DNA of 64,000 nt from Podarcis vaucheri (lineage: Eukaryota): assembly GCA_965113315.1 (NCBI GenBank), contig OZ220375.1; one strand, given 5' to 3'. The notes under the pieces are model-generated. The model was not told the origin of the DNA. It saw only the letters and a program-made list of their open reading frames with translations, and made no database searches. Made by a program: the position numbers and the translations under genes. Positions 1-45,161 of the stretch are shown piece after piece (the stretch's first letter is position 1; every line of letters begins with the position of its first letter).

Positions 1-281
1 GATGGATATCATTTAGCTCCCTCATAATTTTAAGCATTGCTCCAGAGAGCACAGATTCCCACATCAAGTTTTATGTAGCTTGGGGAAAGGTTTGGATGGG
101 CATGTGACCTTCAGTGCACTGAGACCCCAACTTTTCTCAGTGTGGCTGAACTTTCGGGGCATTGTCTTGAGAAGTCAGCAGCTTCAGCTGTGTTGGAGGG
201 TCTTAGGGCACTGGGGCTTATTTACAAACAGTGCTTGGCTTCCTCTAATTTGCCTTTTCCCTTTCCCCCCTTCTAATACAG

Positions 282-314
282 AGTGGAGACATATATGGGA
301 GCTACACAGTCAAG
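282..314 (+). CDS. Putative 33-nt penultimate exon of an unidentified upstream gene
   Basis: Long polypyrimidine tract + tacAG acceptor (280-281) and strong AAG|GTAAGC donor; open in all frames (e.g. SGDIYGSYTVK); product not recognised. Confidence 0.35.
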
Positions 315-1278
315 GTAAGCAAATGGAGGTGCCTGGGCCTAAATCAGTGGCTTCATAAATATGACCTTTGGGGCTCAACAGTGGGCTGGATAGCTTCATG
401 TTAAAGGGGGTATTAAGATTTGCAGTAATGTACAACAATGTGAAGTGGAGGGGAGCAGAGTCCTAGGACAGGGATGTGACTCTAAGAATTGTGGGTGTGT
501 AATTCATACTTTCCAATCCTTGCCATATATTCAGTTGCGTCTCCCTCTCTACTGTACCACACATGCAAAAAACAAACAAAAACCACAAATTTAATCTGAC
601 CACTCGTATTTTGAAAAAATCCAGCCTTTTGTGAGGATTGCTTTCAGAAGCTGAGGGCACTGATTCTACATTTTAATACTGTGTCTTTTCGTGGTTTGCT
701 ATTTAATGTTGTGTCCTAGATGTGTTTGAGTGCATGTGCTCCATAGTTTTGACGACATAACTGGTAGGAGGTGCTGGCTTTTGATCATCTAACACAAGTT
801 TCAAATTACACTTTGAAAATGTTTCTGACCCCACATCATTGCCTGGAGAACTCGAGTCAGTGACACTGAAGACAAGTGCCACTGCCAGCCTAGGCCCATG
901 AGCCAGGCAGGTTTTCTATTCATGTAGTAGCAGGCAGGAGCAGGTAGATGCTATCTGAAAAACTGGGGTGATTGGTTCTGTGCAGTATGGGGAGGTGAAT
1001 AAACTGGACCTTGTGAAGTCATGTGATGGGAGATAGGAAAGTAGAGCGGCTGAAATCCACAACTATCTGATGTTGGATGTGGAGCTGCCTTAAACAATTA
1101 AACCAAATCACAAAAGAGCAGATTAACGAAGGGTCTGTTCTGTGGCCAGCCACTGAGGATAGTAGGGGGGAGAGTGGGATTTTGGGGTGTGTATGTATGT
1201 ATGTATGCACATTATCTGTGGCACATCTCCCTTCAAGGCATTGTTCCTGTTGCCATCACTATTTCTTTTTCCATCTAG

Positions 1279-1622
1279 ATCCTAGCAGAGTGACGGTCTA
1301 CACAGACACCTTTGATGGGAAGGGTTAACTTCAATAATTCCCAGGGGAAGCACCGCTAAGACATGAGGGGGACATGGGGAGAGGCAAGATGCCCACCCCA
1401 CCCCCCTTGAAGACTGGAGAAGCCCAAGCATCTTGAAAGGGGAAGCTCTGCCACCTGCCTACCTCCCTCCCTTTGCTGTTATAGCTCAAATTGTCTCAGT
1501 GGGGCTAATGCCTCACCTCTCTTTTTCTCTCTTGCTCTCTCTCTATTTCTCTCTGATTTAATGCTCTGGTTTTTAATTTCTTCACATGGTTTTTAATTTC
1601 TCTGGATTCCCCTGAAAATAAA
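1279..1622 (+). other. Putative terminal exon / 3' UTR of the same unidentified gene
   Basis: Acceptor tttctttttccatctAG (1277-1278); stop at 1291-1293 (ILAE*) or 1326-1328 depending on frame; AATAAA near 1617-1622. Confidence 0.3.
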
Positions 1623-2989: not shown

Positions 2990-3338
2990 TGGTCCCGAGC
3001 AGCCGTTATCCGGGAAGGCGCGCGGCCTCCTCCCTTCCGAGGCCTAAGTCGATGACGTGATTTACAGTGTAGGGAGCGGCACTGTTTCTATGGCGGAAGG
3101 GCAGCGCGGGGCGCGTGCGCGCCTGTGCGTCACTTGAAAGCGCCCATTCGCCCGCGGATTGAGAGTGGCGCGGAGGAGTCTCGCCTGCGCCTGCGCCTGA
3201 GAGTAATACCTGATAGGATTCCTTTGCAGGAGTTAGGAAATGGGTGTGCGCAGCTGCCTCTTAAAGGGACAGAATCCCCGAGTAAAAGGGGAAGTCGCCT
3301 GAGCGCCAGCCTGGAGGGCTGTAGAGAACAGGACGGAG
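2990..3338 (+). promoter_or_regulatory. TMEM219: CpG-island promoter and non-coding exon 1 (assigned to TMEM219, possibly shared with the Harbinger-derived ORF)
   Basis: Dense CpG cluster; TGACGTGA CRE-like site ~3053-3060; NRF1-like GCGCGTGCGC (3111-3120) and TGCGCCTGCGC (~3186-3196); strong donor GAG|GTAAGA after 3338; nearest promoter-type CpG island upstream of TMEM219 coding exons. Confidence 0.65.
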
Positions 3339-3549
3339 GTAAGATAAGGTTGCACTTTTCTTAACTGTGTACCATTCTTGCATTTCTTCCCCCGGGTCTG
3401 TTCTCCATCTGGTTATTCTCATCTAAATCCTTTTGTTCAGCTATTAGGCTGGCTTTTGGAACAAAATACGCAAAGATTTAGGTTTCGAAGAATGTAGCCC
3501 CTTGGGGGATAAAATAGGGGGTTTTTTTGCCCTCGTTTGCTGCCTCACA

Positions 3550-3700
3550 CCAAGTCAGCCCATTGGTCCATCTTGTATTGTTTACTCTGACTGGCAGCTG
3601 CTCTCCATGGTCTTTCTCAAGCTGAACGCTTCTAGCTGCATATGGCCAGAGGTTGAACTTGCATTTTCTGAATGCAAAGTATTGACTTTGCCTCTCAGTC
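3550..3700 (-). mobile_element. Degenerate tRNA-derived SINE with CR1-like tail
   Basis: gctgcctcacaccaagtcagcccattggtccatct...ggttgaactt; resembles reverse complement of copies at 39660 and 60200; ends approximate. Confidence 0.4.
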
Positions 3701-4099
3701 AGGGAAAGTCACACACACGCCACAATCCTTTGCATATATATGCCCAGAAGTGAGTGGAGCTTATTTCTTAGTAAGTATGCATAGAATTGCAACCTTGCGT
3801 GCATACATTGAGAGAGATTAATACACTCCCATATTTCTGGAGCTTAGACTATTTACAAGTGAATGCATTTTTTTCTCAGTGCACAGCTGAAAAAGAAGTT
3901 ATATGTCTACCTTCCATGTGAAATCCTGCATTTCCCCATTATCATTAATTGTTCCTAAAGCACTTCTTAGCAAGCAATCCTGGTTTTCAGTGTTCTTCTT
4001 GTCACTTTGGAAGTCAGTCAGCCACATCATTGTTTCTCACCATGCTTGATGGACTTTTGCCATTAAGAAAGTTTGTACCTGGATCTCATAACCCAATTC

Positions 4100-4678
4100 C
4101 TGTGGTGCTGCGGGTGATGTGCCAGACTAGGACCGGGGAGACCAAGATCCAAATCCCCATTCAACTAGGGTGGTCAGTCACTATCTTTCAGCCTAACCTC
4201 ACCCACAGGGTTGTTGTTAAGATAAAATGCAGGGACAGCTATGTATGCCTCTTTGAGCTCCTTGGAGGAAAGGTGGGATAAAGGTAAAGGTAAAGGTACC
4301 CCTGCCCGAACGGGCCAGTCTTGACAGACTCTGGGGTTTGTGCGCCCATCTCACATCTATAGGCCGGGGGCCAGCGCTGTCCGGAGACACTTCCGGGTCA
4401 CGTGGCCAGCGTGACAAGCTGCATCTGGCGAGCCAGCGCAGCACACGGAACGCCGTTTACCTTCCCGCTGGTAAGCGGTACCTATTTATCTACTTGCACC
4501 TGGGGGTGCTTTCGAACTGCTAGGTTGGCAGGCGCTGGGACCGAGCAGCGGGAGCGCACCCCGCCGCGGGGATTCGAACCGCCGACCTTTCGATCGGCAA
4601 GCCCTAGGCGCTGAGGCTTTAACCCACAGCGCCACCTGCGTCCCTGGAAAGGTGGGATATTGTGTATTAAATGAATAA
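4100..4678 (+). mobile_element. Old tRNA-derived SINE (Squam3/MIR-like) split by a Sauria SINE
   Basis: Core 'tcagcctaacctcacccacagggttgttgttaagataaaatg...tgagctccttggaggaaaggtgggata', resuming as A/T-rich tail after 4659; ends approximate. Confidence 0.55.
4281..4645 (-). mobile_element. Full-length Sauria SINE (Squam1)
   Basis: Minus strand starts GGGACGCAGGTGGCGCTGTGGGTTAAA with B-box GGTTCGAATCC, ends in (ACCTTT)n tail; 14-bp TSD GGAAAGGTGGGATA at 4267-4280 and 4646-4659; CpGs retained (young). Confidence 0.92.
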
Positions 4679-5199
4679 CACACTGCTGTACAACACTAAC
4701 CATTTTCACACGTGCTTACTCATATTTCTGTCTAACCTAAAAGCTTATTTTGAGCTGGGAGCTTAACCTGCCTGGAACCTGTTTTGAGTGCTACCACTGA
4801 ACCATGAAATAACAGTAAGCCTTGCTGACTAGTTCTCATCTGGCAAGGGGGCTCTGGTTTGCACATGGCATGCTGCCTTTTGGCCTTCCCTCCCCAGACT
4901 CATTAGCTGAGCAGGCAGTTTTCGTAAAGATAGGGCAGGATTCAGTTATCCTATTTCACTAGCAGACGCCAGCACAAAGACTTCTACTAGCCTAATGGGG
5001 CTTCACCCACCTTAGGCCTCTCCCAAATCTGCTCTGAAGGGTCATGAGAACCCCCAGAACAGTTCACAGGGAGGAGAGGGGAAATTGTTCTGTTTGCTGC
5101 TTGCTTGATGGAACAATCTCCTTAGCCCTAGCCATAATTCCACCCATAGTTGTTTTTTAAATCACAATTGTCCCCTCACTAATTTATTAAGAGAAAGCT

Positions 5200-5410
5200 G
5201 GTGTAGTGTAGTGCCTGAGAGACTGAGCTATGAGTCAGAAGTCAGGACTGGTTTGGATCTTACCTCTGCCCTGAGCTCACAAGGTGCCTTGGGGAAGCAG
5301 TTCTCCCTCAACCTCACCCCTCTTGCCATATTGGGGGATAATACCGACTTACAGGCTTGCAGCTGGATGATGCATGTGAACTACTGTGAGCACTTGAAAG
5401 CAGTCTAGGA
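5200..5410 (+). mobile_element. Degenerate Squam3/MIR-like SINE
   Basis: gtgtagtgtagtg...gccttggggaag...ggggataatac...gtgagcacttgaa; ends approximate. Confidence 0.45.
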
Positions 5411-5513
5411 ATATGAGGCATTGTCATTAACAGGGCAAAAGACACCTCTACAGTTGTAATGTGAGCAGGCTGTGTGCTCCCATTGCACATTAGTGTCTGT
5501 GCATTCACACGTG

Positions 5514-5649
5514 CAGGCACCCCCAAACTCAGCCTCCCAGCTGTTTTGGGACTACAACTCCCATCATCCCAAGCTAACAGGAGCAGTGGTCAGGGATGGT
5601 GGGGATTGTAGTCCCAAAACATCTGGAGGGCCAAGTTTGGGGATGCCTG
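5514..5649. mobile_element. hAT-type MITE (136 bp, palindromic)
   Basis: TIR CAGGCACCCCCAAACT / AGTTTGGGGATGCCTG, internal ggactacaactcccatcatccc hairpin; 8-bp TSD CACACGTG/CACACGTA. Confidence 0.85.
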
Positions 5650-7155
5650 CACACGTAGGTGCACTTGAGATGAAACACACCTATAGATTCAACTGTGTGT
5701 GTTTGTGTGTGAGAGATGAATGCTGGAGAATGAGAGCTCTAGTATGTGATTGCTAACGTGATTTTGGTAACAAATTCCCAAAGGCAGGGCCACACCTAGA
5801 AAATAGGGACGGATGGGATGGATAAGGAGTTTCCCAGTAGATCCTTTGTTAGAGTTTAAACCAAACCACTTTCTGTCTCCAGACTATCTGTCTTTCCATG
5901 CCACTATCTTGGCCATCCTTCCCCTCTTCCCTATGCCAAGTCACTGTTCTTTCTTCTCTTCATTGTCTTTGGCAACTGAGTATGGGATGATGATCAGATT
6001 AAATGCCTCTCAAATAAGTATTTAGAAGATACAGTGGCTTGTACAGAACTATGTAGGAACCCAGGCTGCTATTGAAGCTGGTACCTCTATCCGTAATGGG
6101 GTCCCAAAGCTCTCTCTATCTATGTGGTTTGCATCCAGCCCTAACCATGTTATTATTTAAAAGTAAGTACCACTGAGTTCAGTGCGATTTGCTTCCAAGC
6201 AAGGATGCACAGGGTTGCAGCCCTAATGTACTGAGGACACACGGAAAACTGTGTTGCATGAGAAAAATCAATATTCCCTGTGGAAGGGGGAGTGGGGGAG
6301 TTATTGTAGCAGAGAACATGTAGATCAGTTCCCGATGTTCTTCACTGTTTTTGTAGTAAGTCAAAGCTGGGCATTAAATGACTTCTGGGCGTTTTGCTAA
6401 GGATGGTGGAAGAGCAACTGAACTGAATTATTTGGGTCAGTAGGCCAACAGAACTGCTCTGATTCTGTGAGCTTTAAGCACTGAGAACACATTAGCATTC
6501 TGCTCATTTCACAGAAAAGAGGATTTAAAACTGTTCATTTCGCTGTAGTCATGGTTCAAATGGAATATTTGGGGGGAAATAAAATGCAGCTGTCTCACAA
6601 ACTTGAGCAGAGGTGGAGCTCTGGAAAAGTGGTAAGATTTTAAATCTCACAGGATTTACCTCAGAACCTGATTTTCAAGACTCAGCCTAATTGCCTCTGA
6701 GTATGTATAGAGCGCTTTCCCATCACTGCTGAGTAACTCCTGTTGGGCTGAGCACATCTGAAACAAGCAGGGATGCTGAACCTTTGAAGCCAATTAAGTT
6801 ACAAATCAGATATCAGGTGGTTGACCAGTTTTGAGATAAAGTCCTAGCTTCAGAGAGTAGACAGTTACTGGAGGTGGGTGTGGGTTGATGTAAGACGAAC
6901 ACTATGGGAGTAATATAGCAATGTCATTGAGGGGTGGTCAGCTGGAAGACTATTTATGGGCACTGGAGGGAAGCTGGGGTGGGGAAGACAGAACAGAGCC
7001 ATAGGCAACTCTGAAACCTTTATGAATTTTGGAATGTAGAATGGGCAGAGATTGGACCTTTCCCAAGTGTGGTGGAATAATTTTCTTATGCTCCATCTAT
7101 TTTGCTGTTTAGAAAAGGCCTTCACAGTTGAAATACAAATATGATTCAGTTACAA

Positions 7156-7170
7156 TATATTGCCCTTCAG
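7156..7170 (+). promoter_or_regulatory. Candidate splice acceptor for the transposase-derived exon
   Basis: atattgcccttcAG at the transition from AT-rich intron to GC/CpG-rich sequence, 172 nt before the ATG. Confidence 0.45.
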
Positions 7171-7342
7171 CTCAACAGCAGCTTTCCGGCCGAAGCACAA
7201 GGACTGGTGATGTCTTGTCCCTGCCCAGCGACGTCATCCCTGCCTTGGCTAAGGGTGTAGCAAGGGGAAGGTTTTTCTCGTAGCACCTTCACGCCACTTC
7301 CTCCCGAGCCTTCTGCAAGCTTCTTCAAGAGCGGCCGGATAA

Positions 7343-8698
7343 ATGGATCAGGAGTGCCTGGCTCTGGTTGCTGCCTGCGTCCAAACCTCCCAGTTGCTGG
7401 TGCAGCAATGGATGCTCAACAGGCGCACGGTGATTTTCGCCATAGCGAGGATTCTGCAGAGGAGGCGCTTCCGCAGGTCGGCCGCGGTGCTCAGGCGCAT
7501 CCTCTCGGCCAGCGTCCGCCGCAAGAGAGCCCTGCTGCGGCTTCACCGGAACGCCATCGTCTCCGTGGTCACCATGGTGTACTCGTCTTCTCCCGCGCTG
7601 CACTATGAGCACGAGCTGATGGCCTTGTCTGAGCGCTCCCACTGGATGCTTCCGAGGTGCAGCGAATGGTGGGAGCGGATGATCAACTCCGAGCAGGACG
7701 ACAAGTGCTGGATTTCCTTGTTCAGGATGTCGCGGTCCACGCTGATGTACATCGCTGAGGAACTGCGCCCTGCCCTGCAGCGCCGGGACACCGGCATGCG
7801 GTCTCACATCCCTGTGGAGAAAAGAGTCGCCATGACTATCTGGAAGCTGGCGCACCATGACAGCTACAAGACCGTCTCAGAGCTCTTCGGGGTGGGGATT
7901 TCGTCAGCCTGCTCGATATTTGAAGAAGTGTGCGAGGAAATAAACAGCAGGCTGCTGAACCAAATCATTAAGCTGGGAGATCCGCAGGAGATCATTGAGG
8001 GCTTCAAGGAGATGGGTTTCCCCAACTGCCTCGGCGCAATCGATGCAATCCACATTTCCATCCTCTGCCCCCCGTTCTCTGCCGACTCCTACATTAATTG
8101 CAAGGGTTTCTATTCTATGGTGCTGCAGGCCCTGGTGGACAGCAAATCCCGGTTCACCGATATCTACGTCGGCTTTCCGGAGAGGTCCCACGACTCCCGC
8201 ATCTTGCACAACTCTCCGTTCTTCAACAGCATGGACGAAGGCACTTTTGGGCCACAGGCGCCAACAGTGCTGGAAGGCGTTTCAATGACCCCTATCATAA
8301 TCGGGGATCCTTCCTATCCGCTTCGGCCCTGGCTCATGAAGCCGTACCCAGCGCCAAAAACCGGGGCCCAGGAAAAATTCAACGAGAGGCTCGCTAAGTG
8401 CCGCGTGTGTGTGGAGAGAGCTTTTGGGGTCCTGAGAGCTCGCTGGAGGTGCCTGCAGATGAGGCTGGATGTGAGGGAGAAGCTCATTCCTGTGGTCATA
8501 GCCACCTGCTGTATCCTGCACAATATCTGCGAGATCAAAGGGGATGAGTTGCTGGAGCCGTTGGAAAGCCCTGCAGTGGCTGAAAGCCAGAATGCTTCAG
8601 CCAGGCCAAGGGTGCCCTTGTCAGAGGCTGGACTGACCAAGAGAGCTTGCCAGATCAGGGCTGCTTATTGCTCCTATTTTGAAAAGGACCCTGTGTAA
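7343..8698 (+). CDS. PIF/Harbinger DDE transposase-derived protein (HARBI1/ALP1-like, DDE_Tnp_4 type), intronless, 451 aa
   Basis: Uninterrupted ORF with Harbinger motifs: FRMSRSTL; HTH region IPVEKRVAMTIWKLA...VSELFGVGISSACSIFEEVC; GFPNCLGAIDAIHI (D1); YINCKGFYSMVLQALVD; HDSRIL; IIGDPSYPLRPWLMKPY (D2); FNERLAKCRVCVERAFGVLRARWRCL (E); CCILHNICE. Confidence 0.93.
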   Translation: MDQECLALVAACVQTSQLLVQQWMLNRRTVIFAIARILQRRRFRRSAAVLRRILSASVRRKRALLRLHRNAIVSVVTMVYSSSPALHYEHELMALSERSHWMLPRCSEWWERMINSEQDDKCWISLFRMSRSTLMYIAEELRPALQRRDTGMRSHIPVEKRVAMTIWKLAHHDSYKTVSELFGVGISSACSIFEEVCEEINSRLLNQIIKLGDPQEIIEGFKEMGFPNCLGAIDAIHISILCPPFSADSYINCKGFYSMVLQALVDSKSRFTDIYVGFPERSHDSRILHNSPFFNSMDEGTFGPQAPTVLEGVSMTPIIIGDPSYPLRPWLMKPYPAPKTGAQEKFNERLAKCRVCVERAFGVLRARWRCLQMRLDVREKLIPVVIATCCILHNICEIKGDELLEPLESPAVAESQNASARPRVPLSEAGLTKRACQIRAAYCSYFEKDPV

Positions 8699-8820
8699 AA
8701 TGGGGTGGGGGAAGCAAAGCAGGCTCATTTGTCCATGTAATTTCATGGGTGTGTATGACCTGGTTGTAGCATGCAGACCCTGCATTGCTGAAGTCTACTG
8801 TGGTAGTTTTCTACATGTCA

Positions 8821-8826
8821 AATAAA
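8821..8826 (+). terminator. Poly(A) signal of the transposase-derived gene
   Basis: AATAAA ~120 nt after the stop codon, followed by GT/T-rich sequence. Confidence 0.6.
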
Positions 8827-9171
8827 AAGGCTATGATTTTGAGTGGTCTGCTGCTATATTTTCTAAGAGATGGGATTTTTAAAAAGGTAATTGCTATGGT
8901 AAAAGCATAGGGTGGGACTTGAACCAATGCTGGTGTAAAACAGAAGAGTGAACAGTTTTTCTTAAAGGGGATTTACATACCCACCACTCTATCTCTAAAA
9001 CATTAAGAAAAGGACACAGTATACCTGCCTAATGAAAATGGAAGTTCATGGACAAATTTTCTAGCCCGTTAGAAAGTACACTGGTTGCAATCCTATGCAC
9101 ACTTACCTGGGACTACGTCTTACTGAACTCTCTGGGACTTTCTGTGTAATCCTATCATGTTCACCCAGAAA

Positions 9172-9357
9172 CATAGCTGTCAACTTTCAGATTTGAAAAT
9201 AAGGGATCAGCAGCCTCGAAAATAAGGGACCAGCCTCACCTGTCCCGGGGACAGTGTATGGAATATCTAACAATCCGGGATAGCAGTGGGAAGCAGCGGG
9301 AAGCAGCGCTGGAATAAGGGAATTTCCCGCAAAAAAAAGGGAAGGTTGACAGCTATG
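9172..9357. mobile_element. hAT-type MITE (186 bp)
   Basis: TIR CATAGCTGTCAAC(T/C)TT at both ends; perfect 8-bp TSD CCCAGAAA (9164-9171, 9358-9365); internal AATAAGGG repeats. Confidence 0.88.
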
Positions 9358-11464
9358 CCCAGAAATATTTCAAGATGTTTCAGTTGGCTAGTCCAGTATC
9401 CAGCTGTTTATGGGGGAAATCAACAAAGATCATGAAGATGCATGCTACTCCAGCCTCTCCAATACTAAATGCAGGTTTTATGCTACTTTGCTACATGAAG
9501 ATATCGTCTTCTGGGTGTCATCCAAAAGCGGTTTCAGTGTTGCAGGTTCATCTGGAGACCCAGGGATTTTTAAGATGAGACACATGGATTTCAAGGGGAA
9601 TGGCTGACATGAGATTTATATGAACCAGTAACCATGGAGCCACATAATGAAACAGGTTGGACAGTCTTATTAAGCTAAGATACGAACAAGACTTTTGTTC
9701 ACACTAAAACCAGGAATCTTCTAATCATAATTTTCTGGTTTGGTAGGGTTGCCATATTTCAAAAAGTGAAAACACTAAGTTGTGTTTTGTTGTTATATTT
9801 TTGCTAAATTGCAAAAATGGCTCCTTTTTAAGGGAAATCGACACTGCTGGCTTTACTGGTTTAATTGCAGCTTTCAGGGAAAAGTGAAGGGACTGTGTTC
9901 AGGGGCAAAAAGCTTATGCATTTTTTCAGCCTAATAAGTCTAATAAGATATTACTAATAAGATATGACTGTCTGAATGCATTTGATAACTCCCACTTTCC
10001 ATATCTGGGCAGACATGGTTTTATCCTGGCTTGCAAACCAGAAATGTCAGCAACACTGAAACCACTGTTTCTCAGTTCAGATGTCAAGTGAAGCTGATTT
10101 AACAAACTGGGAATCTTCCCCTCCTATGGGGCACATGAGAGAGGAAGCACTCATACTCATGGTTCGCTCCTGTTCTTAAAAATGAATAAATCACTGAGCT
10201 GCTTTACAAAACACTTGTCCTTCCATATTTAAGATTTTTCTAGGAAAGTATATTTTTTCAATTGATAGGGAAGCCAAACACAGAATAAATGCATTCATGA
10301 TAATGGTCATTGTGCTTAATGCCCTGTTTGCTAATTGCTAGGGATGGTCTTCAAGGGGAGACTTCTGAAGCGATAGTGCAAAGCAGTAACCAGTGTACTT
10401 TGGTTGCAAACATGTTCTGCTGATCCTTTCTTTCACAATGCAATATTGTGCAGACACACAGAATGTGTAGAAAGTAGCTTTTGACAATTATGTGCCATTT
10501 GCCACAACTGCAACGTTGAACAGTTAGTGGGATCATTTTAACAAAATGGCTTTAAGCAAAAACTGTAGCATGTTCCTCCACTTCAAAGTAAAAAGATTTG
10601 TTACATTTCCTTTGCTTCCGTAGGCAGCAGTCTGTCTTAGTGTCGCCAGGATTGAATTTGTAGCAGAACTCCCCTAAGCTTAGCACTAGAGCACAGAGGT
10701 TGCTCAAGAGAGTCTCTGGGTTGTATCCAGCTAAGTTCTACTCTAAAGGAGACCTGAAATTATTGAACCTAAGATAGTCTTGTCCATTCAGTTCTTTGGG
10801 TCTGTTCTGAGTACAGCTACTACTGGAGACAATCCTCTCCCTCACCACTGAATGCCACTTCCCCTGTTACAAGTGCTGGAAATGTATAACCCACATTAGA
10901 AAATGGTGGGCAACAATCGCATGTGTAGAATTGTTGCTGCATAAACAGACTTTGAAGACCACCAGGAGTGTACTTGCCACATGTGATAATCTTTATGTGC
11001 TCACCATGTTGTTTCTTACAGAGGACTCGCCTCCTGTGTGTTGTGTAATGTAGGACGCAATCCAGAAAAGCCACAACTATTGCCCCCCAGCAGCACCACA
11101 AACACTCAATCAAGCAATACATATCTAAAGATCAGGGCTTCTCCAGCCAATGCCTTTTCATTTAATCTGCGATTTAGAAGAAAGATGCTAGGAGGTAGAT
11201 ATGAAACAGTGGGGTGAGGGGAAGGAGGCAACATACACATTGTCTTAGCCTTTTGAGGATATGGTGGCTGCTATGTGGATCATAGTGGGATCTGAGAAAT
11301 CAAAAAGGACCAAGTGTCCCTCAGTTGTCCAGCACTCTATTTTTGAAAGTGTATAAGTTGATTGTTCTGTATTTAGCAGTTACCTTGGGACACTTAGGAG
11401 GGTGTTGGAGAAGTTGGTTGTGAGGATCACCAGGCAAAATGGCGTTAGCAGAACTTTCAGTGTT

Positions 11465-11760
11465 GGAGAACATCAACAGCTTTGCTGAATCAGGTGAAAG
11501 GTCCATCTAGTCTGGTATCCCCTTTCCCACAGTGGTAAACTATATGCTTCTGGGAAGCTCATAAACAGGTATAGAAGCAATAGCTGTCACCTGTTATTAC
11601 TCCCTAGTGACAGTATTATCAGGCATGCTATGTCTTAAGTTTGGAGGTTGTATGTAGACTTCCCTTACACTAATAGCAAATTCATTCTCCCAAGTGTGGA
11701 TCCTTGTGCAGCTAAAAGCGCATGATGAGTGCTCATGGAAGAGTTATTCAGGAAGAACTG
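11465..11760 (-). mobile_element. CR1 LINE 3' end fragment
   Basis: agaacat...gctgaatcagg...aaggtccatctagtc...tttcccacagtgg pattern, reverse complement of CR1 tails at 30930 and 31830; ends approximate. Confidence 0.5.
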
Positions 11761-13311
11761 AACATGCTCAGTGGCTATAGAAAATTGACTCTCAGTTGAA
11801 TGGAGGGCGGAATGGACAAGCGGGAGGAGGGAAAATGGAATATCCAGGAAAAGGGCATGGCTGGCTGGCAGGAATTCCAAATAGGAGCCTCCATACTGCA
11901 ACTTTTTGTTGCAGGTTCCACTTGTCATGATTAACAGCTAATGGTAAAACACATTAATTCTCCATGAAAGTGTGTTTAATCCATCTATGCTAGAACCATT
12001 TGTGGACTTAATGTCTATCGGAAGTCTGCAAGCAGGGTCTGAGCACAACAGCCCTGTCCTCACATACAATTCCCTGCAGCTGACATTCCCAGCAGCGAAG
12101 GTACAGGAGATCACATGCTGCACAATGATCTTGCTAGCAGTTCGCTGCAGTAACTGCTAGCAAGTTGATTGTGTGATGTAAACACACCAACATTTGTGGG
12201 ATATACAGCACAAGTCTACCATGAAACTACGCATTCACATGCAATTCTTAAGAAATATGGGGAGAAACTGTCTCACAAGACCCGAAGACTCAAAGAAGGG
12301 AAGCCTTATGTAACAAAGGAATGGAACAAAACTTAAGAAATCAAACAAATGTGGTGTTCAGTTTCCCACAGTTTATGCTGCTTATTCATTTTGTGGGGGG
12401 TTCTCTCTTTTGGTGAATTTTGAGGGGACACACAAAGCTCAGCATCCCCATATTCCTTTTTTAAAAAAAACTTTATTTAAACAAAGGGAAAAATAATGTG
12501 ATCAACAACAGTACATCATGTGGCACTTTAAGATTTGACAGAGATTGTTAAAAATAACCTCCTTATAAAGTTTTCCCCCTTCCTCATCCCCAACAAATAA
12601 CACCACACTGCGAGAAGACTTGGCAATGATGAGATTGCCATGTTGGGTGGAGCAGATGAAGCAACTATGGGTTGCAAATATCCAACTTTCACCTATAATT
12701 CCAGCTCTTTCTTTCCAACTTGTGTTGAAATTTACCACCTTCATCAGAAATATAGAGAAGTAGGAAAACCTGTCAAGTAGGAAAACCTTACCTGTATATC
12801 CTTGAGTGTGACGTTCTTTCATACAAGCAGAGTCATCCAGACAGTTGAGATGATCAAGAATCTAGTGGTTGCTAACTTCAGAAGTTGGCACTTTTAAGTC
12901 CCCCCCCCCCAAATGCATAGATTTAGAGCTAATTTAAACAATGAGGTGTATGTAGTGCAGTCTTCCCTGAGAGCCTTACTGTGTCAAGATACACGTGGGC
13001 AGTGGTTACTTGTCTAAAAACACCCCACAGTCAAAATATATTCATTTTATTAATTTTTGAATTACCTTTCACATGTCTCAATCTGAATTACAATATAAGC
13101 AACTAACATACTTTTAAAAGCAATACAAGATGGAGACCTTTTCATCCAGATGGAAATGTTTGTTGAAACAAAATGTCTTCAGGTATTTTTGGAAAGCACA
13201 TAAAAAATGAATACGAAGTTGCAGCATATCATCTTTCCATTTACATGGCGATCTTGAGGCAGGGGCAATCTCAAGGAAACCAATTCCCACTTTATTTTCA
13301 GCAAGTTTAGT

Positions 13312-13704
13312 CCAGTGTGGTATAGTGGTTAAGAGCAGTAGTCTCGTAATCTGGTGAACTGGGTTCGCGTCTCCGCTCCTCCACATGCAGCTGCTGGGTG
13401 ACCTTGGGCCAGTCAAACTTCTCTGAAGTCTCTCAGCCCCACTCACCTCACAGAGTGTTTGTTGGGGGGGAGGAAGGGAAAGGAGATTGTTAGCCGCTTT
13501 GAGATACCTTAGGGCAGTGTTCCCCAACCTTGGGCCTCCAGCTGTTTTTGGACTACAATTCCCATCATCCTTGACCACTGGTCTTGCTAGCGAGGGATGA
13601 TGGGAGTTGTAGTCCAAAAACAGCTGGAGGCCCAAGGTTGGGGAACACTGCCTTAGGGTAGTGATAAAGCGGGATATCAAATCCAAACTCCTCTTCTTCT
13701 TCTT
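13312..13704 (+). mobile_element. tRNA-derived SINE (Squam3-like) with (TTC)n tail, interrupted by a hAT MITE
   Basis: A-box-like TGGTATAGTGG, B-box-like GGTTCGCGTCT, core gggtgaccttgggccagtc...tcagccccactcacctcacag, 3' gataaagcgggatatcaaatccaaac + ttc tail. Confidence 0.8.
13515..13650. mobile_element. hAT-type MITE (136 bp, near-perfect palindrome)
   Basis: TIR CAGTGTTCCCCAACCTTGGGCCTCCAGCTGTTTTTGGACTACAA and exact inverse; perfect 8-bp TSD CCTTAGGG (13507-13514, 13651-13658). Confidence 0.92.
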
Positions 13705-13989
13705 TAGACAACCAGACCGCATGCACGCTAAATATTTAAATCACCTCTGAGCAATTTATGAGATTGAATGAATATATTTTGGTGTTATTTCCATTCACAT
13801 TTCTGGGACATGATTTGTTTCTTAAAATTTATTTAATAAAGTAATGCTTATGATTGTAGCACACAAAATGCAAAGGGGAATAGGTAGCCCACTGCCTGCC
13901 TTTTCGTTTCCCTTGATTCTGGCTGTTCCAGCTTCTTCCAGTGCTGGGATGACACTGCAACCTTCTCACCCTCATTCCTAGGGCTGACC

Positions 13990-14148
13990 ATGGTCACCTG
14001 CTCCCTGCTGGGCTCCCTGCGTGTCTGCCTGGAGCGACACCCACCTCTGGTCACCTTCTTCTTTTGCCTCCTTTCGTTGGCTGTTGCCTTTGTTGGTTTT
14101 GCTGCCTACATCCAGTCACATGATGTTCAGAATCCTGATGTCAAAGAG
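13990..14148 (+). CDS. TMEM219: TMEM219 (IGFBP-3 receptor) coding exon 1
   Basis: Acceptor at 13981, gaccATGG; MVTCSLLGSLRVCLERHPPLVTFFFCLLSLAVAFVGFAAYIQSHDVQNPDVKE resembles TMEM219/TMEM248 N-terminus (CL..HPPLV, TM helix, PD); donor GTGAGC; adjacent to TAOK2 as in mammals. Confidence 0.88.
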
Positions 14149-14967
14149 GTGAGCTAGAGATGATCACCTTAAGTAGAAAATCAGACCAAAATGCTGGGGA
14201 TGGAATTGGGTTGTGGTTGTAAAGGACGCATGAGAGACTTTAGGAGGCAATGGTGGGTGCTCTACCTTCTCCTTGGTCTCTTAACAACTGTTTAGGCTCA
14301 GCAACTGAGTGGTTCTCTGACTGAAACTTTCAGGATGGTTGGGTTTCTTCTCGGATAAAACGCACAGAATTTCCCTAACAATTCTGGGCTATGACAGGTA
14401 TGTTGGGTGTTCGTTGTAGAGGCAGACTTCTTTTGGCAATTGTTTTTATTTATTTCCATTTTCTAACAGACGAGAGATTTACCCGAATTTGAACAGCTGC
14501 ATTGATTTGCTCTCAAAAATAGTGTTGCCTGTGTTGGCTGCTGTTATCATACCATAATGACCCAAGCTAAACATTCATGAATTACAAAGGGTTGGGTGTT
14601 GTTGGTTTTTACAAATACGCTATAAGAAACTGTCCTTGAAAAGATAGTCCTGAATGGTTACTATCAGAAGAAGTGGGGAGCAAAAGAATAGGATATACAA
14701 CAGTACAAAATTTTAAATTAGTAGGTGCAGCTATATCTGAAATATTCAACGATCCGGGTGTTCTGAGATGTTTTATGGTACTTTTATAATACAGTTCTGA
14801 TCTTTCAATTTTCTAGCTGTTAAGAGCAAAAGGGAATTTTTAGAGGCAAGATTGGGTGAAATTGGAAAGGTACTTTAAAAGGCAGAAGCAAATGAAAAAA
14901 TTGCAATCAAAAGAATAGAATCAACTAAGAGTCAATTCTCATTCCTTTTCCCTCCCTCATCTCTAAG

Positions 14968-15190
14968 GACTGGAATTCTCTGCTAAAGTCTCTGGCACAC
15001 TTAATGTTCTGTATCCCAAATAAGACGCAGGAAAGTGCCTTGACACCAGCTCCCTCCACAACCACTGCTGAGACCCCTACAACAGTCTCTGTCATGGTTG
15101 CCTTGACCTTTGACTTCCACAATGGCACAGATCCTCCCAATGGTACACGCCTAGGTCTGACAGTCACTGGGGAAAAGCTGGGTCTCAAAG
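14968..15190 (+). CDS. TMEM219: TMEM219 coding exon 2
   Basis: AG/GT bounded, in frame: DWNSLLKSLAHLMFC...TVTGEKLGLKG; phase 0 to 1. Confidence 0.88.
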
Positions 15191-15302
15191 GTGAGTGATT
15201 TCTCACTCCTGACCAATTGCAACATCCTCCCAAAGATTTCAGGAACTCTGGTTCCATGTCAGTCTCCCCTTGACCTTTCCTTCCATCAACTTCCAACCAC
15301 AG

Positions 15303-15411
15303 GTCTAGATGCCCAGGAATCAATCCACTTCCTGACTATCATCACGAACTCAGTCTCCCATGAGAACTGCCTTAGCATCACTGCACCTTCATCCCTTCTC
15401 CCCAAGACCAG
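15303..15411 (+). CDS. TMEM219: TMEM219 coding exon 3
   Basis: LDAQESIHFLTII...CLSITAPSSLLPKTR; phase 1 to 2. Confidence 0.85.
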
Positions 15412-15479
15412 GTGAGCCAAGATATTTAGTTTCAAGGAGTTCTTAACCCATTAATGCAATACTCCCATCTTGTCCCCAG

Positions 15480-15591
15480 ACAACCACCTAAATGTGTGAT
15501 AGAGGAATGGGACATGCACCAAGAAGAGACAGGAATTTGTTACCAGCCACATTACCAGGCTAATCCTGCCCTGTCCAGCATGCTGGATCAG
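15480..15591 (+). CDS. TMEM219: TMEM219 coding exon 4
   Basis: QPPKCVIEEW...CYQPHYQANPALSSMLDQ; phase 2 to 0; donor GTAAGA. Confidence 0.85.
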
Positions 15592-15706
15592 GTAAGATGA
15601 ATGTGGGCAGTGACAGTATTTGGACCTGGGGATTCTGGGTTTCTTCAGGATGCAAGCTGGATTATAAGGGAAGGAGCATTCACTGTTGCACTCCTTTCAC
15701 TCTCAG

Positions 15707-15835
15707 GCGGATCGTGCCCTCTGCAGCCAGCGGCTCCTGATGACCAGTGCTTTCCTTCTCTGCCTCTGTGCCATGCTATGTTGTGCAGCTGGCCTGTGCT
15801 ATCCTAACCCCAGAGACAAGTGGGGGCAAATCTAA
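15707..15835 (+). CDS. TMEM219: TMEM219 last coding exon (second TM helix)
   Basis: ADRALCSQRLLMTSAFLLCLCAMLCCAAGLCYPNPRDKWGQI*; spliced total 243 aa. Confidence 0.88.
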   Translation, partial: ADRALCSQRLLMTSAFLLCLCAMLCCAAGLCYPNPRDKWGQI

Positions 15836-42472: not shown

Positions 42473-43022
42473 TCTAATGCATTTGTGGCCGCTGGCCACC
42501 TCTGCTTAAATATGGTGTCAGCAAGTTGATCTCTTCTCCGAAACAATGAATTCTGCAGTGAAGCAATACAAATTCTATGTGTGCACATGCAAAATTCTGC
42601 AAAACCTTCACAAACCTCATTATATAAACTGTTATAAACTATTTCCTTGATTTGCTGAGCATCTCCTTTTTATACTAGTCATAGAGCCTAACCACCAACA
42701 CCTGCATTCCAGCATCATCTGGAAGCTTTGCTAGAAAATAGTGTTCTTTAAAATAGAGGAGAGCTGGGTGTTGCTCAAGATGCTGGCTTTTGCCTCCAGT
42801 CCCAAATTCTGTATTTTGATAGGCTTGGAGGGAGAGTGCTTGCAGCCCTTGACATTAGAGCAAGGGGGAATGAGACAATTGTTATTCTCGGGCCCTTGGG
42901 AGAAGAATGGAAACCTGGATGTAAGAAAGAATGCTGACCCTTTTAAGAGCCTTGATGCCAGGAAGAAGCGAGTCTCCATTGGAGGTGCAGTTCTAACGCC
43001 TTTCCCTTGCTTCCTCCCTCAG

Positions 43023-45161
43023 GAGCTGAACAAAAAGCAGACCCAGAAGGACTTGGAGTGCGCCATGCTTCTGCGCCAGCACGAATCCACGCAGGAGCTG
43101 GAGTTCCGGCACCTGCACACCGTCCAGCGCACCCGCACGGAGCTCACCCGCCTGCAGCACCAAACCGAGCTCTCCAACCAGCTGGAGTACAACAAGCGCC
43201 GGGAGCAGGAGCTGCGCCAGAAACACGCCATGGAGGTCCGGCAGCAGCCTAAGAGCCTCAAAGTAGGTGCTACCTACACCCCGCCTTGCTGCCAGTGGTG
43301 CCCTGACGGGCAGGATGCAAGGGGTCTGGAGCCAGGGCAGGGGCACCCAGGGGTTGTGGAAATGGACACAAATGAGGACGGAAGTCTAGAGCCCTTGCAG
43401 GACCACTTGTGTGGGCCTAGTCCCTGTGACTGTTCAGCCAGGGTTCAGAAATGCCCGGCAGATGCAGAATCTAAATGCGCACACTTTGCGCCACTAGACT
43501 CAAGAGGATGTGAATCGGCTGTTTCGGAGTCTGGTAGCCCTTGTCATGATGATCTAGGCCGATGCAAACCTATTGGAGAGGTTCTGGAGCCAACTCAGGG
43601 TGTTGTTGTAGACACAGGAATAAAATGTCCCAACCTTTTAGGGAAGTGTAGCCATGAAATGGGGGTTCTGGAGCCAGAGCTAGACTGCCATGGGCATGTG
43701 GTTTTAGAGTATGGCCTGGAGGAGGAGGAGGATCTAGAACTGGATGCAGTGCGTATTGGGGGTCTTGTACAGGACTGGTCGCCAAAGGGGGTTGGAGAGC
43801 TGGGTGAGCAGGGTTTGGAGGCCTTGGTGCCTGAATCAAAGTGTTCTGGGGACGTAAAGCCTGATTGGCAATGCCTGGCAAGCGAAATTCCAGATGGGCA
43901 GGAAGCTGCTGCTTTAGAGCAGAGACAGGGGTGCCTTTGGCTCAATGGGAAGGACGAGGAAGTCCTAGATCTAGACAGAAAAGAAGGTTGGATTCCAGAT
44001 TTCGGTGAAACAAGCTTGAAACAGCAAGAACACTGTGGAGAGGGAGTTGCTGATCTAGAAGTAAGCCAGAGGTTTTTTGGAGTGCGGGATCACTTTGGAG
44101 AGGGCTCTGGGGTTCTGTTGTCCGTTCGGGGGCGGCCAGGCGTTCCAGAGCCTGATGGGCAAGAGGCTGATAAGCTGGATCCATTCACATGTGAAGGCAA
44201 TTTATACTCTCACGCCTTACCCACTGTCCTCGAAGAGGGGGCCCTGCGAGGCCCAGGAGATGGCTGCCCAGCCCCTGAAGACCCCTACAGCCAGCAGGCC
44301 AGCAGCAAAGCCCACCCCGTCCCACCTCCCGTGGCAGCCATGCTGCCCCATGCTCTCTGCGTGGTCTTGGCACTGTTAGTCTCTGCCTACCCATGTGCGC
44401 CAACTCTCTTGCTGCTCCTCGCGGCACTGTGGGCGCAGGGTGGCGGGTTTCAGGATATCCTCCTGGCCCTTGAAGGGGCTCTAGTGGGCCTGGGGGTTAC
44501 GTACACCTTGTTGCACTCTGTCTTCCTCCTTTCCGGAGCGTCCTTTCTCCTCCTGGCCAAGATGGCGGGGGCAGTGGGTGTGGTGGGGCTGAGTGCCAGT
44601 AGGGAGCGCCTGTACGTTCCTGTCATCCTCCTGGCTTCCTACCTGTTGGCTTCTCCCTGGCTGTTCCTGCCCCTTTACCTCTTGGGGGCACTCGCACGGC
44701 ACAGCCTGAGGGGATTCCCCCGCCGAGCCCGCCGCTTCTGGCTCCTGGCCCTGCTCCGTCTCCCACGCCCGGCTTTCCGCATCCTCCAGCGCCTGGGGCT
44801 GGTCACTGAGCAGGGGCTGTTCCGCCTCTTCCCCAAAACCAACAAAGGCGGCTTCCGCAGCCGCATCCCGGTGCTGTCCCGCCAGCGCCAGCCGTCCCTG
44901 CCCTGGCACCGCAAGGCCGCGGCCCTTCTTGCCAAGCCGATTTACAGCATCAACAAGATCCTCACGGAGGTGATTTGTGCTCAGCTGCCTCCTTCGGCCC
45001 TGCATTGCCTCAAGGGGCTGCATGTCTTGCGAGAGGAAAGGCCTTCCCGTATCCCCCGCCTGACAGCCAGGCCCCGGGGGCATTCTGTAGGGTCAGGGAG
45101 GCGCATTAGTAGGAGGAGAAGTGTGCAAGGAAGACAGCCTGCCAGGAGACCCTGGAGATGA
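43023..45161 (+). CDS. TAOK2: TAOK2 alpha-isoform terminal exon (first 240 nt, 43023-43262, shared with beta; read-through adds acidic linker, hydrophobic TM region and basic tail)
   Basis: [21 protein letters not shown]...QQPKSLK then read-through of donor AAA|GTAGGT; [39 protein letters not shown], ...PWR* match TAOK2-alpha; spliced total 1349 aa. Confidence 0.93.

Follow-up and report, generated by a model that had tools for sequence, protein, structure and literature searches.

The closest described systems

HARBI1 is listed as the only gene of vertebrates derived from a Harbinger transposase, and its function is still unknown (PMC9392472, 2022, which summarizes the descriptions by Kapitonov and Jurka 2004 and Sinzelle et al. 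2008). In plants and insects, the plant ALP1/ALP2 and HDP1/HDP2 genes and the insect DPLG genes testify to repeated domestication of Harbinger elements (PMC4671723, PMC7282668, PMC5339849, PMC9710019). Here we describe a gene for a protein of 451 residues that occupies positions 7343-8698 on the plus strand of a 64,000-nucleotide stretch (the window) of contig OZ220375.1 of the lacertid Podarcis vaucheri (assembly GCA_965113315.1). It is most probably a host gene that arose from a PIF/Harbinger transposase. The element would have entered TMEM219 intron 1 in the stem lineage of squamates and has been kept since as a single exon of 451 codons.

HARBI1 is a protein of approximately 350 residues, encoded by several coding exons of a gene that adjoins ATG13. 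The squamate gene resembles it in being a domesticated, apparently single-copy PIF/Harbinger transposase with a DDE_Tnp_4 domain and an acidic triad, devoid of inverted repeats and of a linked Myb open reading frame (ORF). It differs in that it appears to be independent, younger and confined to squamates, whereas HARBI1 is reported from all jawed vertebrates. Moreover, the squamate gene resides in the first intron of TMEM219, and its protein of 451 residues, encoded by a single exon, begins with a long arginine-rich helix. HARBI1 needs NAIF1, and the plant and insect proteins usually act with a Myb-like partner in chromatin-associated complexes. By likeness to the Harbinger transposase with its Myb-like protein and to HARBI1-NAIF1, ALP1-ALP2 and HDP1-HDP2, the squamate protein is predicted to depend, probably, on a Myb/SANT-type partner as well. 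ALP1 has lost its catalytic residues, unlike the squamate gene, in which the triad is invariant; the NCBI name 'ALP1-like' denotes family similarity only.

The arrangement of the gene within its host gene finds its counterpart in PGBD3, which lies in intron 5 of ERCC6/CSB. In both cases the transposase ORF lies in a host intron, has gained an acceptor for splicing and a poly(A) site, and forms an alternative terminal exon that is transcribed from the promoter of the host gene. The host mRNA is made alongside the transposase mRNA, as is deduced here for TMEM219. In contrast to PGBD3-CSB, the host exon of the squamate gene is non-coding, which results in a bare transposase-derived protein, and the arrangement appears to be about 200 million years old. 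The mode of capture matches the model of transposase capture by alternative splicing of Cosby et al. (bioRxiv 10.1101/2020.05.07.082677): a joint of the transposase exon to an upstream host exon (3338|7171) is present in the RNA described below.

Harbinger-derived genes of squamates have been mentioned before. In Anolis carolinensis, Novick et al. (2010; PMC3014272) found five ORFs of 442-466 residues that resemble Harbinger but lack terminal inverted repeats and target-site duplications, and they regarded domestication as the likely explanation. The gene described here is very probably one of the five, and an orthologue from Anolis sagrei belongs to the orthologue cluster introduced below. 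Their paper did not contain the locus, the conservation across species, a selection test or the transcript structure, which are supplied here. A 2025 preprint (PMC12262214) describes an intact, transcribed, 'apparently domesticated' Harbinger of approximately 200 million years beside a TRIM/butyrophilin cluster (harbiTRIM) in squamates. Both genes are squamate-wide, similarly old, intact and transcribed, but the preprint names neither TMEM219 nor TAOK2, and no PRY-SPRY or TRIM sequence is found in the window, which covers 7 kb on the upstream side of the ORF and 55 kb on the downstream side. The harbiTRIM Harbinger may be the TMEM219-nested gene or another squamate Harbinger-derived gene, for example the 'ALP1-like' group B described below. 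No paper that ties TMEM219 to a Harbinger gene was found in our literature search. An earlier note, made from the window sequence without database searches, had proposed an independently domesticated transposase gene. The independent domestication is supported, but the gene is less new than that note implied: it is an uncharacterized domesticated Harbinger transposase with partial earlier mention in a RefSeq model, in Novick et al. 2010 and possibly in the preprint.

Being a further vertebrate domestication of a Harbinger transposase, separate from HARBI1 and much younger, with a full triad and limited to one large clade, the gene would provide a natural comparison for the role of a retained Harbinger nuclease in the vertebrate cell. 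It would also illustrate cleanly how the promoter and 5' exon of a host gene can capture a transposase with no protein fusion. It is experimentally tractable, as Anolis sagrei and geckos are open to gene editing.

An intact transposase reading frame conserved throughout squamates

The ORF at 7343-8698 starts with ATG, encodes 451 residues and is free of stop codons and frameshifts. Pfam assigns residues 233-394 (8039-8524) to the DDE_Tnp_4 catalytic domain with an E value of 3.6e-29 and 101.9 bits against a cut-off of 24.8, over the entire model (positions 1-158 of 158), and Plant_tran also matches the protein (E 6e-16). The motifs GAIDAIH, IIGDPSY and RVCVERAF are all present. The columns of the predicted catalytic triad in an alignment of 51 family members contain D at D234 in 50, D at D322 in 43 and E at E358 in 37 sequences (codons 8042-8044, 8306-8308 and 8414-8416, respectively). 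The G+C content at third codon positions (GC3) is 0.75, and the observed/expected ratio of CpG is 0.69 in the ORF versus 0.15-0.19 in the flanking intron. The intact frame with its Harbinger motifs and D-D-E triad and the GC3-rich, CpG-retaining codon usage had both been read from the sequence in the earlier note, and both hold. An antisense ORF of 177 residues (7325-7858, minus strand) overlaps the 5' portion of the gene; it was discarded, since the GC-rich codons of the sense ORF explain it best.

Orthologues were sought with a word-indexed search of 5.8 billion proteins. They form one cluster at 90% identity (P0001, 44 members), and the next matches do not exceed 52% identity. Fifteen of the 44 members were listed, all of exactly 451 residues; they derive from three geckos, two lacertids, the amphisbaenian Rhineura, the cordylid Hemicordylus, Anolis, Pogona and six snakes. 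When these 15 sequences and that of the window were aligned, no gap was required and the mean column identity was 97%; D234, D322 and E358 are invariant in all 16. The gecko and snake proteins are 93.8% identical, and the window protein is 98% identical to the Podarcis and Lacerta orthologues. Eight of the 15 listed orthologues carry the NCBI name 'insulin-like growth factor-binding protein 3 receptor isoform X1', which assigns them to TMEM219, and these eight span five squamate lineages (geckos, snakes, lacertids, Rhineura and Pogona). The naming as a TMEM219 isoform therefore lends indirect support to a conserved position and a shared exon and points to orthologues at the same TMEM219 locus across deep squamate divergences. 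A Phrynosoma model (P0086), aligned with the window by tblastn, is 95% identical over the ORF but only 60-84% identical over the TMEM219 exons. Constraint is thus stronger on the transposase-derived protein than on the gene that hosts it.

The NCBI names of the intact protein vary among IGFBP-3 receptor isoform, HARBI1, ALP1-like and uncharacterized. The filing of one protein as an IGFBP-3 receptor 'isoform', as HARBI1 or as ALP1-like exposes a recurrent annotation error. Two submitter models splice out in the middle of the ORF and are probably annotation artefacts: P0086 of Phrynosoma fuses residues 35-110 to TMEM219, and P0114 of Crotalus horridus truncates the protein at residue 186.

Selection was estimated by comparing the window ORF with RNA contigs of a single sister-genus lacertid, termed organism A. 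The two differ at 22-23 sites, with 12-13 synonymous codons and eight non-synonymous ones, and the amino acid changes of organism A are those of the Podarcis protein P0102. From this short, noisy comparison, three methods yielded a rate of non-synonymous substitution (dN) of approximately 0.009, a rate of synonymous substitution (dS) of 0.043-0.051 and a ratio omega of 0.15-0.24. The value of approximately 0.2 is not near 1, the outcome that the earlier note had named as incompatible with domestication. Omega and the 16 lineages free of stops and indels together exclude neutral evolution of the aligned reading frame.

Transcription from an upstream CpG-island exon

RNA was mapped on positions 3050-9000. 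The material comprised three probable RNA assemblies (X1, X3 and X10), which come from three studies of two organisms, together with one run of raw single-cell RNA reads; the organisms were two lacertids related to the species of the window. The RNA depth in X1 and X10 is zero over 5836-6830, within the intron; therefore, these two assemblies represent RNA.

The gene is transcribed as a spliced mRNA of two exons that starts at a CpG-island promoter at approximately 3000-3150 and ends after an AATAAA signal. The promoter region is placed at 2990-3157 (approximate limits) on account of its CpG ratio, a GC peak and the RNA start. The CpG ratio is 1.0 over 3000-3340, the sole CpG island of the region, which contains exon 1. 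An RNA contig and raw RNA reads start at approximately 3158. Non-coding exon 1 extends from approximately 3158 to 3338; the X3 contig covers it with no differences and stops exactly at the donor, whose GT occupies 3339-3340. A contig that stops there is compatible with more than one downstream partner, since a branch point of the assembly graph is expected at such a donor. The GT..AG joint 3338|7171 (3336->7169, cut +2) is documented by one X3 contig and, among the raw reads, by 44 that begin at 18 different positions; three reads use a minor acceptor that gives an exon start at 7113. The intron thus removed (3339-7170) contains SINE-like repeats (SINE, short interspersed nuclear element). The terminal exon (7171 to approximately 8839) comprises the rest of the 5' untranslated region (UTR), the whole ORF and the 3' UTR. 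It is covered by contigs at 7197-8839 (X1), 7169-8985 (X3) and, in pieces, 7182-8834 (X10). The X10 and X1 ends at 8834 and 8839 lie 8-13 nucleotides past the AATAAA polyadenylation signal at 8821-8826. A spliced, AATAAA-terminated transcript, for which the earlier note had proposed a search in RNA data, is thus present in contigs of two organisms and in raw reads.

The coding content of exon 1 is limited to an upstream ORF (uORF) of 20 codons, and the main ATG at 7343 lies inside the transposase exon. No host protein domain is fused in frame to the transposase, as the ORF uses its own ATG. As a single coding exon that is spliced to an upstream non-coding exon, the transposase exon behaves as an alternative terminal exon. 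We infer that expression was gained by capture of a promoter and a 5' exon, without protein fusion. Exon 1 is very probably the first exon of TMEM219, because no second GC-rich island occurs between 8.9 and 13.9 kb and the TMEM219 ATG is found in the next exon; the NCBI names in eight species likewise suggest that the exon is shared. The location in TMEM219 intron 1, another claim of the earlier note, is supported by the downstream TMEM219 exons on the same strand and is refined in that the gene is also spliced to the upstream exon 1.

Two uORFs are present in the 5' UTR of the transposase-derived mRNA, one at 3240-3302 (20 codons) and the other at 7210-7260 (16 codons).

Predicted structure and activity of the protein

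An AlphaFold2 model, built on the 51-sequence family alignment, reached a mean predicted local distance difference test (pLDDT) of 82.9 and a predicted template modelling score (pTM) of 0.72. It starts with a long, arginine-rich helix (residues 3-82; 7349-7588) that is near-invariant in squamates, with block pLDDT values of 79-85 for residues 1-70, 68 for residues 71-80 and approximately 50 from residue 81. Structural searches with this helix returned generic coiled coils only. Since related families have N-termini that can be aligned to it, with approximately 25% identity, the helix is derived from the transposon and not from the host. A confident helical region (residues 108-223) follows, which includes the putative helix-turn-helix (HTH) at residues 157-204 (7811-7954); there the predicted helices have pLDDT values above 90 and HTH_Tnp_4 scores 18.9 bits. 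Residues 229-399 form a core of beta-sheet and helices, after which come a disordered loop (residues 409-427) and a conserved C-terminal helix.

In the model the core has the RNase-H-like fold of transposases. VIA-align matched it to piggyBac (Z 9.6, 236 residues aligned) and Tn5 (Z 9.3, 246 aligned), followed by the Tn4430 TnpA (Z 8.3) and ISCth4 (Z 7.5) transposases. Foldseek against the PDB returned nothing at E <=0.001, and its weak matches were nearly all transposases and integrases. A phmmer search of the PDB sequences gave matches at chance level only; therefore, no structure of a Harbinger transposase has been solved. The ESM Atlas yielded generic Harbinger clusters only. Prediction of a homodimer of the full protein gave a score of 0.01, which is evidence neither for nor against dimerization.

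Because the N-terminal helix, the HTH region, the catalytic core and the C-terminal helix have all been kept, it is most likely, as far as sequence and model can tell, that the protein has retained DNA binding and the ability to cut or nick DNA. A more far-reaching proposal is that a catalytically competent nuclease has been retained with hardly any change in all lizards and snakes for approximately 200 million years on the TMEM219 promoter, with a binary choice for each transcript between a membrane protein that resembles a death receptor and an enzyme that cuts DNA, and that this enzyme carries out programmed cleavage or rearrangement of host DNA rather than serving as a mere scaffold. We consider this proposal doubtful.

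Origin of the gene and alternative explanations

Relatives were collected by a filter-free HMMER scan of 1.84 billion representatives clustered at 50% identity. The scan returned 20,819 relatives, none of them between 54% and 92% identical to the window protein. The nearest non-squamate relatives are at most 54% identical, and the nearest relatives belong to reptile Harbinger families. In a maximum-likelihood tree of 98 rows, which did not include an authentic HARBI1 sequence, the 16 orthologues form one starred clade with tips of 0-0.03, a total length of 0.28 substitutions per site and a stem of 0.25 + 0.46; within it, snakes (98, starred) and geckos (85) are each monophyletic. Its successive neighbours are other squamate Harbinger-derived groups and then a multi-copy turtle family, the 27-row subtree of which has a length of 4.8. 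This pattern fits a single insertion in the stem lineage of squamates, with strong constraint from then on, and neither orthology with HARBI1 nor a mobile family.

Hallmarks of a mobile element are missing. A pair search and a targeted scan of the flanks revealed no inverted repeats flanking the ORF above shuffled controls. No Myb, SANT or MADF sequence was found in the open stretches scanned within 3339-13947, which were the ten longest of 22 stretches of at least 70 residues and, in addition, the 201-residue ORF 13114-13719. For each species the protein is on record from one contig, and the RNA forms one contig at even depth, which may point to a single copy per genome. The scans of the flanks and open stretches support an immobilized gene that lacks terminal inverted repeats, a target-site duplication and a Myb ORF. 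The earlier note had seen neither inverted repeats nor a second, Myb/SANT-type ORF and had concluded that the transposase gene was domesticated and immobilized; the controls and scans agree, as do the 451-residue orthologues, the purifying selection and the transcription.

The following course of events would account for the observations. A transposon inserted into TMEM219 intron 1 after the split from the tuatara and before crown Squamata arose approximately 200 million years ago. The element ends and the Myb-like partner ORF were lost and the single exon of 451 codons was retained. With exon 1 being the first exon of TMEM219, the transposase exon would compete with the TMEM219 exons for the exon-1 donor and provide intronic polyadenylation, such that each primary transcript yields either the 451-residue protein or TMEM219. 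The protein would keep the arginine-rich N-terminal helix, the HTH region, the RNase-H-like core with its three acidic residues and the C-terminal helix.

Several points weigh against this account. Synteny relies on NCBI gene naming. The junction of exon 1 with TMEM219 exon 2, over 10.6 kb, is deduced. Absence outside squamates is judged on predicted proteomes, from which genes with a single exon inside an intron may be missing. The dN/dS ratio comes from one close pair with approximately 20 substitutions, and the HTH_Tnp_4 score falls short of the Pfam cut-off of 27 bits. The protein product, its catalysis and its partner are predictions.

The alternative that fares best, although it is unlikely, is a domestication that predates squamates, was lepidosaur- or sauropsid-wide and was lost or left unannotated in tuatara, turtles, crocodilians and birds. 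The long stem leaves room for such an age, and the reliance on predicted proteins just mentioned allows for missed genes. However, none of the 1.84 billion representatives fills the range of 54-92% identity, the best tuatara protein (P0116) is only 39% identical and lies nearer to turtle and group B sequences, and the turtle relatives are multi-copy and divergent.

It is also rather improbable that the ORF has been conserved mainly as regulatory DNA for TMEM219, by intronic polyadenylation or as a decoy exon, with a dispensable protein. An alternative terminal exon downstream of a probably shared exon 1 would suit such a role, as would the two uORFs before the main ATG, but a regulatory function would not preserve an open frame of 451 codons, free of indels, across 16 lineages, nor would it give an omega of about 0.2 or invariant catalytic residues.

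Even less probable is that the gene is the squamate orthologue of HARBI1. NCBI names it 'putative nuclease HARBI1' in Gekko, Thamnophis and Ophiophagus; it shares the Pfam family of HARBI1 and, like HARBI1, has kept the DDE triad. Yet HARBI1 is reported to occupy a conserved locus across all jawed vertebrates (PMC9392472), whereas no bird or mammal protein was found among the 98 named matches of the word-indexed search (only ten of the 150 HMMER matches listed were named). The gap in identity described above separates the squamate protein from its closest kin, which are reptile-specific Harbinger families, and the locus is that of TMEM219-TAOK2. The distinctness from HARBI1 asserted in the earlier note thus agrees with the pattern of matches, the locus and the published facts on HARBI1.

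An active or recently active autonomous Harbinger copy, present by chance in the TMEM219 intron, can be dismissed: the ORF is intact with a complete DDE triad and related elements are multi-copy in turtles, but there are no inverted repeats above chance and no Myb-like ORF in the scanned stretches, each species has one protein on one contig, the 94% identity between gecko and snake and the tree are compatible with vertical descent, the exon is spliced to a host exon, and CpG is retained with a GC3 of 0.75.

Other Harbinger-derived genes of squamates

The sister of the TMEM219-nested clade in the tree is P0015 of Eublepharis (LOC129323443, 320 residues), which sits on a long branch (1.0) and is 52% identical; it may be a duplicate of the gene that is decaying in the leopard gecko. 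A second squamate-wide Harbinger-derived group, 'ALP1-like' group B, comprises P0003, P0005, P0006, P0008, P0010-P0012, P0014 and P0016, with approximately 470-515 residues. It forms one clade (100, starred) with short tips and a gecko-snake identity of 83-85%. At the third catalytic position, geckos, Varanus and Rhineura have E, but Pogona, Phrynocephalus, Thamnophis and Anolis have D or G. Judged by these sequences, group B looks like another domesticated gene, possibly at the harbiTRIM locus. In a third squamate group, consisting of P0004 (Anolis R4G9P6), P0024 (Varanus) and P0113 (Phrynocephalus, a model of 1125 residues), the identity within the group is 68-79% and the triad reads D-G-T or D-G-A, which suggests that these proteins are probably catalytically dead. 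Candidate KRAB-transposase fusions, in which KRAB is combined with DDE_Tnp_4, are predicted in the geckos Paroedura (P0051) and Heteronotia (P0059) and in the tegu Salvator merianae (P0118).

Neighbouring features of the window

The TMEM219 exons were placed solely with the Phrynosoma database protein P0086 by tblastn. The first coding exon (13932-14148, plus strand) contains the ATG at 13990 and is bounded by an acceptor AG at 13930-31 or 13940-41 and a donor GT at 14149; an upstream ATG at 13949 precedes the start codon. The other coding exons lie at 14959-15192, 15269-15412, 15463-15606 and 15704-15832 on the same strand. A TAOK-type kinase exon is found near 34104. Downstream of it, an open frame of 806 residues (42741-45161, plus strand) has no Pfam domain and is probably the low-complexity C-terminal exon of TAOK2.

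Two repeats in intron 1, at 4244-4641 and 5438-5636, show RNA-contig depths of 10^4-10^5 with many variant copies and are of the SINE type; the first has a tRNA-like end at approximately 4560-4640. The window begins (1-1620, plus strand) with the apparent 3' end of a gene, in which a Pfam scan found no domain; its candidate last exons are near 282-315 and 1279-1330, and an AATAAA is located near 1616.

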